Assembly: GCA_965202585.1 (NCBI GenBank)
Contig: OZ241828.1
Coordinates: forward strand, 25,668,001-25,732,000
Reading direction: 5' to 3'
Source: Thalia democratica
Lineage: Eukaryota
DNA length: 64,000 nt
Position 1 is the stretch's first letter, and each line of letters opens with the position of its first letter. A program made the translations under genes and the position numbers. The notes beneath the pieces are model-generated. The model saw only the letters and a program-made list of their open reading frames with translations, searched no databases and was not told the DNA's origin. Below are positions 1,681-29,166 of the stretch, in pieces.

Positions 1681-3741
1681 AAAGTTAAACAAAAACTAAT
1701 TACGTCTATTTCTGACTTAAAGCCAAAGTTATAAACACTAATTCAAAATAGACTTTTATTTTGGAGCTTGTAACGCACTAATTTAATTTTTTGTTAAAGA
1801 ACGCGAAACCAAACAATACAAATAAAGAATCCAAATACAGACAAATCAAGAGTTATAAACCAATTAAAAAGAAAAGAAAAAAAAAACTAATTAATTAACT
1901 TAAAAATTAGTGAGCAATTTACGTCATAACTAGAAAATTCCAAGTTTTTTGCTCTTGAATACAAAAGTTAGTTTATTTCAGTTGAGTTGTATACTAACAA
2001 ATTTAACTCTGAACTTAAATTTATATGGGTTTTTTTACTGCTGAACAAGACTAATACTTGTTTAAAACATTGAATTTCTGAACATTCAACTAACTATAAT
2101 ATAAATCACCCTAACGATTGTTCAAATGGTTAATTTACTGAATTTACTGAACATGAACACAATTATTTTAGCTTTAAATGGTCTCAAGTGGATGAAATTA
2201 TTCGCGCTAAAAATTTTTAGAAACAGTTCAAACTTGAACTTGATTTTCTGTATTTTTTACCGCTAAACAAGCCTAATCCTTGCACAAAACACGAAATTTC
2301 TTCTTATCTCATTCTAATGGGATTCATGAAAATAACAAGACAATTTTACTTGCATTACCAGTCTGCTAATTACATTAGCTAATTAGGCTTGCATTTAAAC
2401 ATTTAATTTTTAAGTTTTTCTGTTAAACAACTTGTAATTGCCTTAAGCCAGCTTGAAAAAGTCTCACATCAACTTGTTTTTATAGTAATTAAATTACAGT
2501 TTGTTTGTTGGGTAATTAAGTAAAACAACGTTTAAAATGTTTAATACGCTTGGAACTTTCGTAACACACTAATAGAATATTAAAAAAAATATTCACAGTT
2601 CTCTCTTAATTGTAAATAAATTTGAAGGGGAACACCAAACTAAACAACTCGAAATCCTGACTCTAAAATTTTCTTTGTTCTCTAAAACTAAATCAATTAA
2701 AAACTTAAGTTTTTAGGAACTCCCTTACAATGATTTCAACAACATACCAACAAATAAATTTTTTAATTAAAAACAGTTTTTGTAGTTTTAGTTTAGTAAA
2801 AAAGTAGGTTTTGTTTGTTGGGCTAGTTCCATAAAAACGTCGTTTGTGAGTTATTTGCTGAGTGATTTTTCACAAAAGAGCTCATTTCGCATAACAGGTC
2901 GATTTGCGCATAAAAAGCAGCAAAAAGTTAATCGAATTTTTATTGCTGCAATTTGGTTAAAATCACCGAATGAGCCAATATGTTTAAATTTTTTTCAAGC
3001 TCTTTGTGTACAGAGTTTAACATTTTTTTCGTAGAGTGATTTGATAAAAAATTTTAAGGTTTTATCATGATATAGTTAGTCCAAACACAATTAAGTTAGT
3101 TTACATATCAAAATTAGTTTACACGTTAAAGTCTGAATTAAATTAAATATTGGTTTATTTAATTTAGGTTAATATCTAAGCACAGTTCTAACTTATAACA
3201 AAACGTTATTTAGTCTTTTTTTAAGTTCTTACTTTAATGTACATCACTGATTTTTCGCTAGTACAATGGTAGTTTGAAGGTTCTTTTGAAAAAATTACAA
3301 GCAATTACCAATCTCAGTTTCAATCATGACATTTACAGAGAAACAAAACTAAAGGTTGTGCGGAAAACTTAGAAACATGATCTTTTCAATTATCTTAATT
3401 ATTACGCTACGCAAAAGGACAATTTATGGTACAAACAGATATCAAGATCAAACTTAAGCTTTGACATTTAACAGCAAAAGTAAAACCACACTGAAAATAG
3501 CTAGTTTGGTGAAAAAAGTCATAAACCTTTACTACTTAATTTCCTCATTTTTCCTCTAAAGTAATTACTTCCCATTATCAGCAAGAATCAGTACTTACAA
3601 GAGCCTTTTATTGAAAATAAGAAAAAAATACCGCATCTACTAAGCTTAAATTTAAATAAAGACATTTAAAGAACTTAAAAATTTTTTTTTTGAAAAACTT
3701 TTGTTTTGACGAAAACACTCACAAATTTAACTACTTAATTA

Positions 3742-5820
3742 TTATGACGTCATAAAATTTACCTCTTTCTCCTGGTTAGTCATGCCGTCGTTTTCAAGCA
3801 CCTCGCTTGCCACATTCACTGTGAACTCCAGCTGCGAGATGATGTCGTCCACGTAAATGAAGTCTTTTTTCTTTCTCCTTTCAAAACTGGAAGACTGGGA
3901 CATTTGCCCGTTGTAGTTGTTTTCCATTTCTTCTGCTTTTCCTTGAGAGCCGTCGTTTATTTCAACTTCATTTGCCTCGCCCTGAGAGACAGTGTCTGAT
4001 GCCCCGTCTTGGAACTTAACTTCTTCGGCCTCGATTTCTTTCATCACTTTTTCCACTTGCGCCATCTGTTCTGCAGTGACCCCATGTTCACCTTTGCGCA
4101 CGTGTTTCTTCTTCTCCCGACCAATGTCAGCTTTACTTTCAGTCATGCCAATGCACACTTCTTTGGGTGCTGTTTCCTGCGCATTGTTTTCTTCAACGGT
4201 TTCTTGTTTCACTACAGTTGCGTCTGCAGAACATTCTTTGCTTTCAGCATCAACTTGAGCTGTATCGTTATTTTCTACTTCATCTTGTGAGACTTTAACT
4301 GCATCGTCTGTAACTTCGACTTTGTTTTCTTCGGCCAGGCATTTTTCTTCGGCCTCGATTTCTTTCATCACTTCTTCCACTTGCGCCATCTGTTCCGCGG
4401 TCACCCCGTGGTGCTCGCCGTTGAGCACGTGCTTCTTCCTCTCCCGGCCAATGTCGGCTTCGCTCTCAGTCATGCCGATGCAAACCGTGCTCTCAACAAA
4501 CTTGACTTTAGAGTCGAATATCGACTGCTTCAGCGTGGAAGCCAGGTTGCCCGCTTCGGTGCTCTGAACAATGGTGGCGTCTGAGTCGACGAGGAGATTA
4601 GATTTCTTGTCCTGATCGTCTTCAACTACCGACTCTACCAGCAGTTTGGACTCTGCATTCAAACTCTCGTGGACTTCTACCACAGGGGAGCTTACTGACG
4701 AGCTGCCGGCTTTGTTGTTTTCCGCAAAGTCTGAGAGGCTTGATTCCAGAACTATTTGCTCGCTTGCTGCCTTTACTGCGTCCACTGCAAGAGCTTCCGG
4801 TTCGGTTTCGGTCTTTTCCTCCAAGCTGTCCGTTTCGACTTTAGTTTCGTCTTCCACTGAGCTTTCAGAAGAGATTTGGATTTCCGGAGTTGCAACTTCT
4901 TCATTGGTTTCAGGAGCAACATCGTTGTTCTCAACAGCTTCGGTAACAGGTTCTTTTTCCTCTACGGCCTCAGTTGTAACCTCATTTTCTTCAGGAACTT
5001 CAGGAGCTTCTTTTACTTCATCGCAAGTTTCGTCAACTGTTTCATCTGCTGGCGCAACAAGGCTTTCCACCGTCACGTCGGCAGGAACCTCTTGGTTATC
5101 AACGGCTTCGGGGCTGACCACAACCTGCACGGGTGACTCTCGAGCATCAGCAGCTTTATCATCAGATACTTCTGTGGTTTCAGAGGAGGCTTCGTTCACT
5201 TTGTCGGAAGATGATTCAGCAGCGTCGTCAGTTGAAACTTCATCCACATTCTCCTTGATCTCGGCATCAAAGTTCTCCAACACCTCGTTGACCTCTTCTG
5301 ATTGGTCGTTGGTGATCGTGACGTCACTGTTCACGCTCGACCGATCGCCGCTCGACGGCGTCGGAACTTCCATTGTGACGTCACCGCAGACGGTCGACGC
5401 GACCTCCGACTCGGCTACCACGACGTCATCATTTACGCCCTCAGATTGTGGAGCGTCTCCTTCCTTTGGACAGTTTCCGTTCGTCTCTACGATTATGACG
5501 TCACCGTCGTCAACTTTCTCCTCGACCTGAGGGGAGTTTTCCCCCTTGTTGTTGCCGAGGGTGACCTCGGAAGGAGAGGTGATTACGATCCTGGGAGGTT
5601 CGAGGTTGTTTCCCTCTTTGTTTTCTCCTTTCTTGCTCCCCTGCTTCTTCTTCTTTTTGCTCCCCTTGAAAGATCCCCTTTTGACCGACCTGAACCCTTT
5701 CAGAAGCCCCTTCTTTTTCGGTTTTTCCCCTTGAGCGGGGTAGGCCTCCCCGTTTTCGATCGCGGGGCTTTCCTGGGGTTTCACCTCCTTTTTACTCTCA
5801 GATGAAGATTTGTTTCCCAT
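3742..5820 (-). CDS. 692-aa acidic, likely disordered protein with MGNKSS myristoylation motif and polybasic segment (MARCKS/AKAP12-like architecture); may instead be a giant exon ending at the donor after 3763
   Basis: Long GC-richer ORF; ATG in aaaATGG context at 5820; strong acceptor ctttttacAG 37 nt upstream (exon start 5857); KKKGLLKGFRSVKRGSFKGSKKKKK; E/D/V/S-rich body; GAG|gtaaat donor 7 codons before the stop; AATAAA about 130 nt after the stop. Confidence 0.88.
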   Translation of the reverse strand: MGNKSSSESKKEVKPQESPAIENGEAYPAQGEKPKKKGLLKGFRSVKRGSFKGSKKKKKQGSKKGENKEGNNLEPPRIVITSPSEVTLGNNKGENSPQVEEKVDDGDVIIVETNGNCPKEGDAPQSEGVNDDVVVAESEVASTVCGDVTMEVPTPSSGDRSSVNSDVTITNDQSEEVNEVLENFDAEIKENVDEVSTDDAAESSSDKVNEASSETTEVSDDKAADARESPVQVVVSPEAVDNQEVPADVTVESLVAPADETVDETCDEVKEAPEVPEENEVTTEAVEEKEPVTEAVENNDVAPETNEEVATPEIQISSESSVEDETKVETDSLEEKTETEPEALAVDAVKAASEQIVLESSLSDFAENNKAGSSSVSSPVVEVHESLNAESKLLVESVVEDDQDKKSNLLVDSDATIVQSTEAGNLASTLKQSIFDSKVKFVESTVCIGMTESEADIGRERKKHVLNGEHHGVTAEQMAQVEEVMKEIEAEEKCLAEENKVEVTDDAVKVSQDEVENNDTAQVDAESKECSADATVVKQETVEENNAQETAPKEVCIGMTESKADIGREKKKHVRKGEHGVTAEQMAQVEKVMKEIEAEEVKFQDGASDTVSQGEANEVEINDGSQGKAEEMENNYNGQMSQSSSFERRKKKDFIYVDDIISQLEFTVNVASEVLENDGMTNQEKEVNFMTS

Positions 5821-7894
5821 TTTTGTGATTTTAATAAAACAACTAATTAATAATAAACTGTAAAAAGGTTTACAGTAAATATGAATTCTTTGATAATTTT
5901 TAAAATACAATATAAGCTTAACTAACCAAAGTAGCTTAGGGCACGAATTAATCGATAAGTAGATCAATTGATCAAAACAAGAGTCTTGTAGGCAAGCTGC
6001 CAAAACAACTCACTGAACAGATTACAAGGATATATGATCATTTAATAAAACAAACAAGTTAATCTAATAACAAGTGATAGTTTATAATTAGCTTGGCTGG
6101 GATACCAAATTACAAAAAGAAACAAACAAGTTGGTGTAGTAACAAACTTAACAAGTGTACGATTGTTGACTTGGCAGCATTCGAACAAAGTAAGACTTTT
6201 AATTAAATGCACAAGTCATAAAAGCACTGTGGTTGAGTTACAACAATACTTGTTTAAACAAAGCGAGCATTCAGCTTAATTAATGCCATGAGAGCTGGTC
6301 TTGAACAACAATTGTCAAGTTAGTTATCTCATCTTAAGTTAGAGTTAATTTACTAAGTCATGTTCAAATTGTATGAACATATAAAAACTCTTATTCAACA
6401 AAAACCATCCTAGCTAAACTTAAATGTAAAGTTAGCACTCAATGACGTTTTAATGGAATATAAGTCTAATTTCGTACACAAAGCTTTAAACAATCATCTT
6501 CAATTTACTTAGTTAGTTTATCATATACTTTTATAAATATAACAACATGTAAAAACTGTCAAAGTATGAAATTCCAAAAACAGTTTATTAAAACTTCCTA
6601 TCAACAAAATTATTATATCAATATAAAGTACAAGCTAGTGTTGTCCAAAATTTATTAACGGTTTAAAATTTTCAAGCCGCTTTTAAAACAATAAAACAAG
6701 TTCTGTACACTTAATCTCTATCAATCTATGTAAAAATCTCATATTGTGTGTATATATTTAAAAACTCAATTGCAACATAGTATATGTGGTTTCCGCTCCG
6801 TTTCACTACACAAAAAAGCTCATTTATTTCAATAATGAAAACCCAAACCGCTCAAACTTCCTCGGTTAACCGAAAACTTTCAGCCTTTTTTATTGTCTTA
6901 TCTGCCTAATCTTTTTTTTGCTCTACTGTCGTGTATTCCGAAAATAACTTTTTGAAGCGAGCAGTGTTTAAGCGTATCGATTTATGAGGCGCATATACGT
7001 GAGTGCGTGTATATTGAAACAATTAAAACTTTTGCTGTGTCTAGCTCGGATCACAGCTTGTATGTTAAAGTAATTTTACGCAGTGAGTCTTACGTGAACA
7101 AAGAGCATTAAATGCAAATTGAAGTACTATTTTTTGTCAATTACGCATGAAAATATTCTTTTTTTGTCATAATATAGGTAGTTTTTGTTCCACTTACGTA
7201 AAAATGTTTCTAAAGTATAACAAAAACAAAATCAATAAAGTTTAGCATACTTTTTAGTTATTGTTTAACCTCGCTTTGTACTGTAAAACAGTAAACCTTA
7301 TCGTATTGCTTCAAAAAAAAAACAACAACTAAATACATAAAAATTCTAATTTTTTAGCTTTTATTAAACTTTAGCAGCAACTAAAGGTTGCCTTAAACAA
7401 GTAACATTTACAAACGCTGATGATAAAATCAAGCCCTGAGAGAATGACCTTTAACAAGATATAATTCACTTTGAAAATATCATTGCAGTTAACTTTCAAA
7501 ACCTAACTTTTACCCAGTTTGATATGTGTTTATTATTTATTCATGGCTAAACAAGTACTGTCCTCGCATATTCCAAGTAAATAAATGTCAAAGTTTTTTT
7601 TTAACTTCTAAAATCAATATTTTATACTCCTTAGTAACGTAAAACCACAAATAAACAATAGTTTATTTTTTCTTTATCAAAAACTTTTGTTTACGGTTTT
7701 AAATCTAACCTACAAGCTAAAATCTATAATCTAACAATGAAAATAAAAACTATTTTCTTTAAAAATAACACTTTATTTAAGCGAATAATTTTCCAGTCGG
7801 CTTAAAGTTATTACCCTGTCTGCACATTCAACATAAAATTTATTCGATGTCCTCAAGGAAAATAATCGTGTTGCCGGCTGAAGTTAAGACTTAC

Positions 7895-8050
7895 TCTAGT
7901 GACGTCATAATGAAAAGTACCGCGTGACGTCATAATAAGGGAAGACAATGAAGTTCGAGGCTTGTTTGTTGGGGCGCAGCAGCTTTTTGCTACCGCTGCT
8001 GCGAAAACACTTGTTGCCGTTCAAGTTGTGATAAGGGATAGTGGAAAGAA
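7895..8050 (-). promoter_or_regulatory. promoter-like island/candidate non-coding exon with paired TGACGTCA sites and a 9-bp hairpin
   Basis: TGACGTCA at 7900 and 7925; IR cgcagcagc/gctgctgcg at 7975-8003; AGA|gtaagt donor at 7894. Confidence 0.4.
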
Positions 8051-9602
8051 AAATTCATTTGTTGTTTGGTGGTTATTCTTAAGGAAAATGTGAGCCAGCT
8101 GTCAAAACTCTTACTTATCGGTTTTAATGAAGTTTTTTAATGAACTAGTTAGTAAAATTTTCACATTATCTTTAGTTATTATTACATAGATTTGTACACT
8201 AAAACAAAAACTATATTACTTGTAAAAGTTGTAGCTTATTACTTACAAAAATCATTAAAGAGCTAGTTTGTAAGTGTTTCACATGATCTTTAAGTGGTTT
8301 TAACCTGGTTTGTATTGCAAAAAGTTGAGTAAGAACTTTATCACGTATATGAACTTGGGATAACAAGCTGCTATTCGAGTTTCTATTGCAAGTTTGCTAT
8401 AAAAAATTTTACTTTTAAGAATGTTTAAGTGTTGTCGGCTGTCATAACTATAACACATTCAAAAACTTCTAAAAATTCTCAATAAAGATAATTAACAACT
8501 TGTTTCAGTTCATAACCTTAAATTTTATAGTTCTAGAGTTGTAGTAATTATGTCTTTACAACTTTTCATAACATATGTACAACTCCAATCACAGGTTTAC
8601 ATTATAAAATTTTCCATTGTCATTAGTGTTGTTACTTTTTAAAATATAATTTAAAGACGAAACAAAGGCTAGTAAGTAAATATGTACAATGTTGTATTTG
8701 AAACATAGTACTTGAATAAAACAAGTTAAGCAATAAAGCTTTCATCGTAACGTCAATAAAAAGTATATTAAAGCTGTCAAAACTGAACTTAAAAGTGGCA
8801 ATTAAACATTGAACCGTGAAAAAAAGGGTCGTTAGTTTAAGTGATTAGTGGTCAGTTTTTTGCTAGTTTAAAAATTGCTGTAAAATTTTTGTTTTAAAGT
8901 TTAGAAGGTTTTAAAATTCATAAGAAAATTCAAATATGTCAATAAAAAATGCGAACAGCTGCTATGTAATTTTTCATTCTAAAATATAAATTTCACGTGT
9001 GAAATAAATAACCTAACTAGTCATAAAAAACTAGAACGCAGTAAAATTTTATGAGAATAATGTCTTCAGTTACAGTATTTCGTTCATAAAAGAAAGCTGC
9101 GATATAAGTGTCATGTTTTAAGAAAATATAAAATTATAACTAATATTTATTGTAGAAATATAAACCAGACACTAGAATTTTTATCTCTTTACACTTCTGT
9201 TTTTAATTTTTAAAAGGTTTTATAAATAAAAACTAATCTGACTAAAACAAAACTTCAAATAAGTCTGTGAGTTTTTTATTAAAAATGTGACTACCTAAAG
9301 TACAAAACTAACAGTAAGACAAACTTAAAAAACACAATAGATCATTGTTACTTCTAATTATATATTTTGCTAAAGGTTTTCTGAGACTTAAACAAAAACA
9401 TTAGAAACTTTCTACATTAAAGTTACCAAACAGCCATAAACAAACTAGTACTTGTGAACGTGACTCTAACTTGCCGAAATTAAATTAATTTAAAATAATC
9501 TTTCTTTATATACTTTATTTTACATTATATAAATTAAATTTAGAAATATAATGTAAAAAAACTATAATAAAACTAGCTGACACAAAGCTTTCAAACAGTT
9601 AC

Positions 9603-9694: not shown

Positions 9695-9727
9695 TGACGT
9701 CACAGTTAGAAGTGCGCTATGACGTCA
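9695..9727. promoter_or_regulatory. paired CRE-type palindromes, 25 bp apart
   Basis: TGACGTCA at 9695-9702 and 9720-9727; same 25-bp spacing as the 7900/7925 pair. Confidence 0.5.
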
Positions 9728-23824: not shown

Positions 23825-23956
23825 CTCACAAATTCCAAGCTTCTCATTGGTCCATTTTCCAGGGTCCACACTTGACTCCTGACTATCAAGGTTCCTGAAC
23901 AAGTAATCAGGAAAGTTTCTGTCGGGGTGACGGGTCCTGGTCGAGATGTTTCCCAT
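23825..23956 (-). CDS. ATG-initiated 44-codon exon MGNISTRTRHPDRNFPDYLFRNLDSQESSVDPGKWTNEKLGICE, probable alternative first coding exon
   Basis: GC rises abruptly at the ATG (gtcATGG), third codon positions are GC-rich in this frame, and GC drops at a GAG|gtgact phase-0 donor followed by T-rich sequence. Confidence 0.6.
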
Positions 23957-29035: not shown

Positions 29036-29166
29036 CTTGTTGTCTTGAAGTTTCTTCGCATCCGGTGATTCCCCTTCAGCAGTGACGTCATAACCCCGGC
29101 AAACGACAAACGTGACGTCACTCTTCACCCCCCTCAAAACGTTGACCGCTTCCCTGTGGCTTAGTC
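29036..29166 (-). CDS. scrib: scribble exon T: PDZ4 end (GLSHREAVNVLRGVKSDVTFVVCRGYDVTAEGESPDAKKLQDNK)
   Basis: tgtcAG / GTttgt, phase 1->0; last scribble exon recognisable in the window. Confidence 0.92.

Follow-up and report, generated by a model that had tools for sequence, protein, structure and literature searches.

The 64,000-nucleotide stretch of Thalia democratica DNA analyzed here (contig OZ241828.1, positions 25,668,001 to 25,732,000; referred to below as the window) carries on its minus strand a 686-codon exon with a basic N-terminal head and a long acidic body. The coding sequence of a message arising inside the scribble locus begins with this exon. Scribble is a conserved polarity and tumor-suppressor scaffold whose cortical localization is attributed to its leucine-rich repeats (LRR), and whose C-terminus has recently been recognized as a string of cytoskeleton-binding short motifs. 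On balance, we favor the reading that the exon opens an abundant scribble-internal mRNA in which a probable lipid-plus-charge anchor, a candidate calcineurin dock and an acidic tail are joined to the C-terminal end of Scribble. Sequence beyond the window is given in the coordinates of the adjoining pieces L005 and L007.

The exon and its place in the scribble locus

The exon is present once in the 802-Mb genome. Its ATG (5820-5818) opens a product starting with MGNKSSSE, and 2058 nucleotides lead from there to the exon end at 3763; no stop interrupts the frame between 6009 and the TAA at 3744-3742, the open reading frame (ORF) counted from the ATG being 692 amino-acids long. The G+C content is 42-53% in the exon and 27-30% around it. 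The first 100 residues carry a net charge of +11 and residues 101-686 one of about -105; the exon product contains 16.8% Glu and 7.1% Asp and has an isoelectric point of 4.27. The elements from which a membrane scaffold had been predicted (a MGNKSS start, a polybasic stretch with serines and about 600 acidic residues) are all present on the minus strand, the acidic part corresponding to residues 101-686. Their location downstream of scribble PDZ4 is equally correct, as the last PDZ4 exon lies 23 kb upstream on the same strand. An AG at 5859-5858 puts the would-be exon start at 5857 (ttttacag/TTTATT). Both the strong acceptor at 5857 and the perfect phase-0 donor at 3763 called in the original prediction exist as sequences; use has been seen for the donor and not observed for the acceptor.

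Further upstream on the same strand, LRR exons are found near 62.2 kb, followed by four PDZ domains encoded by two exons each (51.0/46.2, 41.5/40.9, 36.5/33.6 and 33.1/29.2 kb). The LRR exon matches other LRR proteins; for the PDZ exons tested, the matches are PDZ domains of Scribble and DLG with solved structures. This order, LRR and then four PDZ on one strand, corresponds to the LAP4/Scribble architecture. The transcript described here encodes neither LRR nor PDZ in its own product, since the exon starts at its own ATG, out of the PDZ4 frame.

Expression and splicing of the transcript

Four public runs contain the exon stretch, and their reads were compared over positions 2200-8150. Runs X2-X4 exhibit an even, DNA-like coverage throughout. 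In run X1 (47 M letters), positions 3792-5781 are covered 140-370 times and the flanks 0-7 times, a contrast indicating that X1 behaves as RNA; the depth is 3.6-6.8 in the downstream intron and 1.2 in 3394-3592. Two X1 contigs break from the genome, one at 3763 and the other at 3762. The letters beyond these breaks map to -1086..-1063 and -1488..-1479, with a single occurrence each in the next 40 kb and an AG acceptor before each on the minus strand. The corresponding targets are exon starts at L007 8937 (window -1063) and L007 8522 (window -1478), 4.8 and 5.2 kb downstream.

Proteins P0002 and P0004-P0007 are ORFs of Tara Oceans metatranscriptome assemblies (source 'merc') from near relatives. 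Mapped by tblastn, they are 89-100% identical over the end of the exon and align as spliced pieces crossing 3763, in the order exon 1 end, exon 2 and/or 3, exon 4, exon 5 or 6. The X1 junctions and these spliced ORFs establish that the 3763 donor is used and that exons 2 and 5 are optional. The message is therefore expressed and spliced as far as exon 6, the exon that harbors the SADH motif described below. It had been anticipated that the exon would be part of a longer transcript rather than a one-exon gene, and use of the 3763 donor in X1 and in the transcript-derived ORFs of relatives bears this out. Whether all transcripts read through 3763 was looked at in X1, where the two junction contigs leave at this position.

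To note, an AT-rich repeat lies just inside the intron (3665-3702). It is 3-4x over-covered in all three DNA runs, and DNA-run contigs break there with many differing loose ends, as would a dispersed repeat or a polymorphic insertion site. Because of this over-coverage in DNA, the apparent X1 depth just below 3763 (bin 3593-3791) is inflated.

The 5' end

The original prediction left it undecided whether the exon was internal or the first coding one. Joining the phase-0 donor of PDZ4, or that of a second candidate head exon starting with MGNIST, to the 5857 acceptor yields four codons (FIIN) and then TAG. The homologue P0001 (contig L002) also starts with MGNK, with an in-frame stop, TAA, two codons ahead of it, and its exon likewise closes at a phase-0 donor. 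The exon being out of frame with both donors, and the homologue having a stop ahead of its ATG, it is a first coding exon and not an internal one. Above the exon, the X1 depth falls ~50-fold, stays at 2.9-5.4 up to ~6380, a level comparable to that of the downstream intron, and is 0-1.7 beyond. A nearby internal promoter, with an outron discarded by trans-splicing at 5857, would give such a profile; the 5' end of the mRNA is probably produced by spliced-leader trans-splicing at that site. In P0001, a pyrimidine-rich AG is found 17 nucleotides before the ATG (L002 1-70 and L003 200-265), which fits leader trans-splicing in that species too. The MGNIST candidate exon itself agrees with the myristoylation consensus, and its donor could be joined in phase to exons 2-8; a basic stretch and a PxIxIT motif are both absent from it.

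The Scribble tail

Exon 6 ends in YKDFAAVP (residue 932 of a 1303-amino-acid model), an exact SADH motif, which P0005 and P0006 connect with the head exon. SADH, with the pattern Y-[KR]-x-[FL]-A-A-[ILV]-P, binds spectrin CH1; it was described in SCRIB, ABLIM1-3 and dematin, by a paper that reports it as vertebrate-specific (PMC4350421). By our own estimate, chance matches would occur at ~1e-5 per 600 residues. The frame of the 12-exon, 1303-amino-acid model closes using AG/GT sites only, with consistent phases; exons 7-12 are predicted by this frame logic. Exons 11 and 12 would encode ...EAEKRKQQRMAKFKSLEAEALQAQMVI..., and the predicted C-terminal end reads ...ERALSPSERRAMEAEKRKQQRMAKFKSLEAEALQAQMVI.... 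The latter may align in register with the WRAAR box of human SCRIB. The WRAAR-like region would be intron-split here (exons 11/12), and the WRAAR box, a Shroom ASD2-binding helix reported for all metazoan SCRIB genes, is likewise split over two exons (PMC10626209). Pfam analysis of eight downstream exons returned nothing meaningful. As these downstream exons are the C-terminal motif region of Scribble, the protein is not simply the lineage-specific membrane scaffold that had been proposed.

Several local features accompany the tail exons on the minus strand. Predicted exon 7 contains three tandem ~30-residue repeats, DQF(E/A)SVKEKS..YI.H..KP.SEPEKQ, belonging to no known family. The donor region of exon 9, GGTAATTCCCTCAACAGAAA, is duplicated head to tail (L007 543-660), providing two phase-1 and one phase-0 donors. 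The acceptor region of exon 6 also has a decayed copy, located ~150 nucleotides above the real acceptor (L007 3240-3400).

Table 1. Features of the scribble-internal transcript and its surroundings (window coordinates unless a piece is named)
Feature	Position	Strand	Basis or remark
Last PDZ4 exon of scribble, ends AAG/gtttgt, phase 0	29036..29166	-	sequence
Second MGN head candidate MGNIST, 44 codons, GAG/gtgact, phase 0	23825..23956	-	sequence only
Putative outron / 5' flank of transcription unit	5858..6380	-	inferred: X1 depth 2.9-5.4, G+C ~30%
Leader between AG acceptor and ATG, 37 nucleotides	5821..5857	-	no ATG inside; candidate spliced-leader trans-splice site
Start codon and N-myristoylation consensus MGNKSSS	5800..5820	-	fits PROSITE PS00008
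Polybasic effector-like stretch, residues 33-64	5629..5724	-	KRGSFK and several S-x-K sites
Composite calcineurin-docking candidate LEPPRIVITSPS, residues 73-84	5569..5604	-	LxVP-like + PxIxIT + Ser at position 9, regex
Acidic disordered region, residues 101-445	4486..5520	-	net -3 to -17 per 50 residues; s-D-V-[TI]-[IVM] patches
Repeat 1, 47 residues, VCIGMTES...KEIEAEE, residues 446-492	4345..4485	-	AlphaFold2 helix, predicted local distance difference test (pLDDT) 64-81
Repeat 2, 46 residues, residues 555-600	4021..4158	-	sequence comparison; AlphaFold2
Second basic patch RRKKK and predicted helix DFIYVDDIISQLEFTVNVASEVLEN, residues 648-677	3790..3879	-	pLDDT ~50-56
Splice donor GAG/gtaaat, phase 0	exon end 3763, GT 3762-3761	-	used in X1 contigs and relatives' ORFs
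TAA met only on intron retention	3742..3744	-	no clear X1 read-through
Exon 2	L007 8857-8937	-	tblastn of relatives' ORFs; absent from P0005-P0007
Exon 3	L007 8442-8522	-	tblastn of relatives' ORFs
Exon 4	L007 7282-7488	-	tblastn of relatives' ORFs; GTTTGT donor functional
Exon 5	L007 6386-6523	-	in P0007
Exon 6	L007 2992-3246 (window -6754..-7008)	-	in P0004-P0006; ends YKDFAAVP
Exon 7 (predicted)	L007 2167-2673	-	AG/GT borders + phase
Exon 8 (predicted)	L007 1018-1176	-	AG/GT borders + phase
Exon 9 (predicted)	L007 543-648	-	AG/GT borders + phase
Exon 10 (predicted)	L007 49-136	-	AG/GT borders + phase
Exon 11 (predicted)	L005 9373-9483	-	AG/GT borders + phase
Exon 12 (predicted), holds stop	L005 7579-7699	-	AG/GT borders + phase

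The head: a probable membrane anchor

The N-terminal consensus is followed, at residues 33-64, by a basic stretch containing 16 Lys/Arg by our own count and only 2 Phe. MGNK and Ser6 are identical in P0001, in which the VKR-x-SFK segment of the polybasic stretch is also kept. From these letters, the head is a probable MARCKS-type lipid-plus-charge membrane anchor, with a lipidation that would occur at Gly2. The layout of MARCKS and AKAP12 that had been recognized in the exon is real as far as the myristoylation consensus and the conserved Ser/Phe polybasic stretch are concerned; membership in either family is not supported. A Pfam-A hmmscan of the 692-residue ORF, with E-values up to 10, returned no MARCKS model and no WSK motif (AKAP12/AKAP5). 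The terminal helix and the repeats were considered as PKA RII-binding helices and rejected: the pattern [AVLISE]xx[AVLIF][AVLI]xx[AVLI][AVLIF]xx[AVLISE] of such helices has no match anywhere in the 686 residues.

The head: a candidate calcineurin dock

A further element of the head, absent from the original prediction, is a block of 17 residues, LEPPRIVITSPSEVTLG, that is 17/17 identical in P0001, a protein ~29% identical overall. It contains PRIVIT (residues 76-81), a canonical PxIxIT core corresponding to PVIVIT with the change V2R. PRIVIT sits between the basic stretch and the acidic low-complexity region, in a segment devoid of Pfam domains and disordered as judged from its composition. 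By our own estimate, P-x-I-x-I-T would be expected ~0.005 times by chance in 690 residues. In the selected high-affinity peptide PVIVIT, V2R enhanced calcineurin binding, and a phospho-residue at position 9 of the PxIxIT motif also enhances binding (PMC6728138); position 9 is here Ser84. The peptide of the candidate docking site in the head is LEPPRIVITSPSEV. Its spacing, LEPP-RIVIT-SPS, is that of LDVP-DIIIT-PPT in calcimembrin, with Pro in place of Val in the LxVP half; LEPP fits the permissive ELM-style pattern L.[LIVAPM]P. The head may hold a near-optimal calcineurin-docking site, PRIVIT. In the literature searched, no paper was found linking SCRIB with myristoylated isoforms or with calcineurin.

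The acidic body and its homologues

Beyond residue 100, about 590 acidic residues of low complexity follow. Patches of this region, GDVIIVETNG and SDVTIT among them, have counterparts in P0001 and P0003, and another one is found at the extreme C-terminus of the model. Repeats 1 and 2 share 41/46 aligned residues, with 120/141 identical positions in their DNA; the DNA differences comprise 13 synonymous and 5 non-synonymous changes, which argues that the repeat peptide is under constraint. These 47-residue repeats were also considered as SADH motifs and rejected, as SADH was found in a downstream exon. The RRKKK/helix segment is identical in P0002 and P0004. AlphaFold2 modeling of residues 420-692 yields helices amid disorder and no globular fold (mean pLDDT 48.5). 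In organism B, an in-frame deletion of 3 nucleotides is observed at 5002, together with a net in-frame indel of 135 nucleotides across repeat 2, the latter in one low-depth contig.

Homologues are scarce. Pfam and PDB sequence searches with the whole ORF returned nothing. A word-indexed search of 5.8 billion proteins identified one homologue, P0001, and an exhaustive phmmer search over 1.84 billion representatives yielded three matches only, P0001-P0003. P0001 is 406 amino-acids long and is carried by three Tara metagenome contigs. The JGI metagenome scan with an alignment of the head provided no relatives. In the ESM Atlas, residues 420-692 gave no usable match, and the sole match to residues 1-100 is SPATA33 at a score of 0.77. 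SPATA33, itself a PxIxIT calcineurin tether, is at this score a lead only.

Other features of the locus

The window contains 16 copies of the CRE/ATF-type (cAMP response element) palindrome TGACGTCA, where 0.37 would be expected. One TGACGTCA pair is found in each of two intronic GC islands, at 7900-7932 and 9695-9727, its members 25 nucleotides apart. Genome-wide, the paired arrangement TATGACGTCAC-N10-20-TATGACGTCAC occurs 52 times, versus 0 for the reversed control, with unrelated spacers. The paired TATGACGTCAC has the look of a regulatory element rather than of a transposon. Exons are also rich in this octamer, which codes there for D-V-T or D-V-I. The two GC islands were also considered as exons and rejected, the one at 7.9 kb (7.8-8.1 kb) for its zero X1 depth and the one at 9.7 kb, which is beyond the span of the reads, on sequence, having no good frame.

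An adjoining gene is found on the plus strand from about -15.2 kb (L005 ~2670-4800, window -17331..-15196). In its product, a transmembrane-like segment precedes a tail that contains five E-x-Y-A-x-[VI] tyrosine motifs and resembles an immunoreceptor-type signaling tail.

Proposed function

The product would be a Scribble-tail protein devoid of LRR and PDZ, its myristoyl/polybasic head taking over the cortical targeting otherwise ensured by the LRR. The protein would leave the membrane once its basic stretch is phosphorylated, as in MARCKS, and calcineurin docked a dozen residues away would reverse this release upon a rise in Ca2+. The tail would link the complex to spectrin, Shroom and the actomyosin cortex without LRR or PDZ.

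Such a protein would represent a natural separation-of-function experiment, the tail of Scribble acting without LRR and PDZ. It would also connect the polarity machinery to Ca2+ and calcineurin, a link not encountered in the literature searched, and would be the second natural design combining a myristoyl group and LxVPxIxIT after calcimembrin, described in 2025. The exact SADH in a tunicate Scribble tail would move the origin of this motif before the tunicate-vertebrate split. A more general idea is that the Scribble tail (SADH, WRAAR) is an autonomous module placed behind interchangeable myristoylated heads, this exon and MGNIST, with a self-resetting kinase/calcineurin switch coupling Ca2+ to the spectrin/Shroom cortex; we regard it as speculative and unlikely.

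Alternative readings

Several observations weigh against the reading favored here. X1 carries no RNA record, its RNA nature being deduced from the exon/intron contrast and from intron-less contigs, and one contig only stands behind each X1 junction. The high-depth X1 contigs stop at ~5789, 31 nucleotides inside the ORF, and neither a spliced-leader junction nor an mRNA 5' end is found among the X1 loose ends listed. Exons 7-12 are predictions from frame logic, and the likeness of their end to the WRAAR box of human SCRIB is tentative. In the head, residues 1-100 contain no Cys for S-acylation, and the LxVP half of the dock carries Pro at the usual Val position. The extent of the message is the issue in two readings. 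A stand-alone one-exon gene, reading through 3763 to the TAA and polyadenylated near 3600, would account for a stop 7 codons beyond the donor, an AATAAA-like signal near 3610 and some X1 depth in the 3593-3791 bin. It is extremely improbable, being largely refuted by use of the 3763 donor: the two junction contigs leave there, five spliced ORFs of relatives cross it, the excess in the bin coincides with the AT-rich repeat, and the depth drops to 1.2 in 3394-3592. Very improbable as well is an internal cassette exon of full-length LRR-PDZ Scribble entered via 5857, in which MGNKSS would be an internal, non-lipidated Met. The frame is indeed open for 63 codons above the ATG, from 6009, and the acceptor is good, but this acceptor requires a phase-2 donor, and the PDZ4 and MGNIST donors are in phase 0, hence FIIN-stop; moreover, the X1 depth is ~50-fold lower upstream of the exon and ~0 past 6380, positions 5821-6009 have a G+C content of ~30%, unlike coding sequence, and a stop lies two codons ahead of the ATG of the homologue.

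The two other readings accept the transcript and differ on its meaning. In a gene fission, the LRR-PDZ message would stop just after PDZ4, and the tail exons would belong to a separate gene, in which new myristoylated heads always precede them. Read-through past the PDZ4 donor indeed gives Val-Cys-stop, the stop being two codons on, no PDZ4-to-tail junction has been seen, which also counts against the favored reading, and word searches with P0002 and P0005 (candidates of 83-264 and 109-346 amino-acids) gave head-to-tail ORFs only. Conversely, the PDZ4 exon ends in AAG/GTTTGT, a hexamer proven as a donor at exon 4, in a phase 0 that suits every exon 2-8; an early stop is expected by chance in an intron of 27% G+C, and all metazoan SCRIB genes have been reported to carry the WRAAR box (PMC10626209). 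Such a fission is possible, though doubtful. Finally, the transcript may be as described with its head motifs idle, the exon being a fast-evolving acidic spacer that is neither lipidated nor involved in membrane switching or in docking calcineurin. For most of the exon, no homologue was detected among the 1.84 billion representative proteins, Pfam and PDB gave no match, and the model shows mainly disorder. Yet the head is the one part conserved in P0001 (MGNK, VKR-x-SFK and the 17/17 block around PRIVIT), and a P-x-I-x-I-T motif would hardly arise by chance at the frequency estimated above, making idle motifs quite improbable.

Comparison with known systems

Among the closest parallels for the head of this scribble-internal product is MARCKS, in which phosphorylation of the basic stretch breaks membrane attachment. 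Both share the Gly2 consensus, Ser residues in a KR-x-S-F-K context together with hydrophobic residues, and an otherwise acidic, disordered, Glu/Ala/Ser-rich sequence. They differ in other respects: there is here no MARCKS Pfam match and no MH2, the basic stretch possesses 2 Phe versus 5 in MARCKS and lies ~30 residues from the N-terminus instead of mid-protein, and the product is four times longer and fused to the Scribble tail. AKAP12 (gravin/SSeCKS) and AKAP5 (AKAP79/150) are likewise scaffolds of large size, acidic and disordered, that lipid and polybasic segments attach to the membrane, and AKAP5 exhibits a PxIxIT-type calcineurin anchor, PIAIIIT. However, neither a WSK match nor an RII-pattern helix is found here, and in the absence of sequence similarity to AKAP12/AKAP5 there is no evidence of PKA anchoring.

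Calcimembrin (C16orf74) is N-myristoylated and disordered, and brings calcineurin to membranes via LxVPxIxITxxpT (PMC12612047). The present head also has an N-myristoylation consensus and would be disordered, and its LxVP-like and PxIxIT parts may reproduce the contiguous LxVP-PxIxIT of calcimembrin, with a shared proline and a candidate phospho-acceptor at position 9 (LDVPDIIITPPpT versus LEPPRIVITSPS). Whereas calcimembrin needs S-acylated Cys7/Cys14, the polybasic stretch would take that role in the Cys-free head. Calcimembrin is a microprotein of 76 amino-acids; here the module heads a 1300-amino-acid protein, with Pro for Val, and no homology is implied.

Canonical Scribble (LAP4/SCRIB) shares the locus and strand, and the transcript enters the exon bearing the exact SADH. 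In contrast, LRR, LAPSD and the four PDZ are absent from the product, membrane targeting would depend on lipid and charge, and ~690 extra N-terminal residues have no counterpart in described Scribble proteins. The gene organization is reminiscent of the short, internally started isoforms of giant scaffold genes, such as Cronos titin, in which a first exon private to the isoform supplies the ATG within the large gene and is spliced onto the distal exons; here, the private exon is large and provided with its own candidate targeting and docking motifs, and its 5' end is probably trans-spliced. The product would work like MARCKS, AKAP12, AKAP5 and calcimembrin, but membership in none of these groups is established; its locus and tail make it a Scribble, its domains do not.

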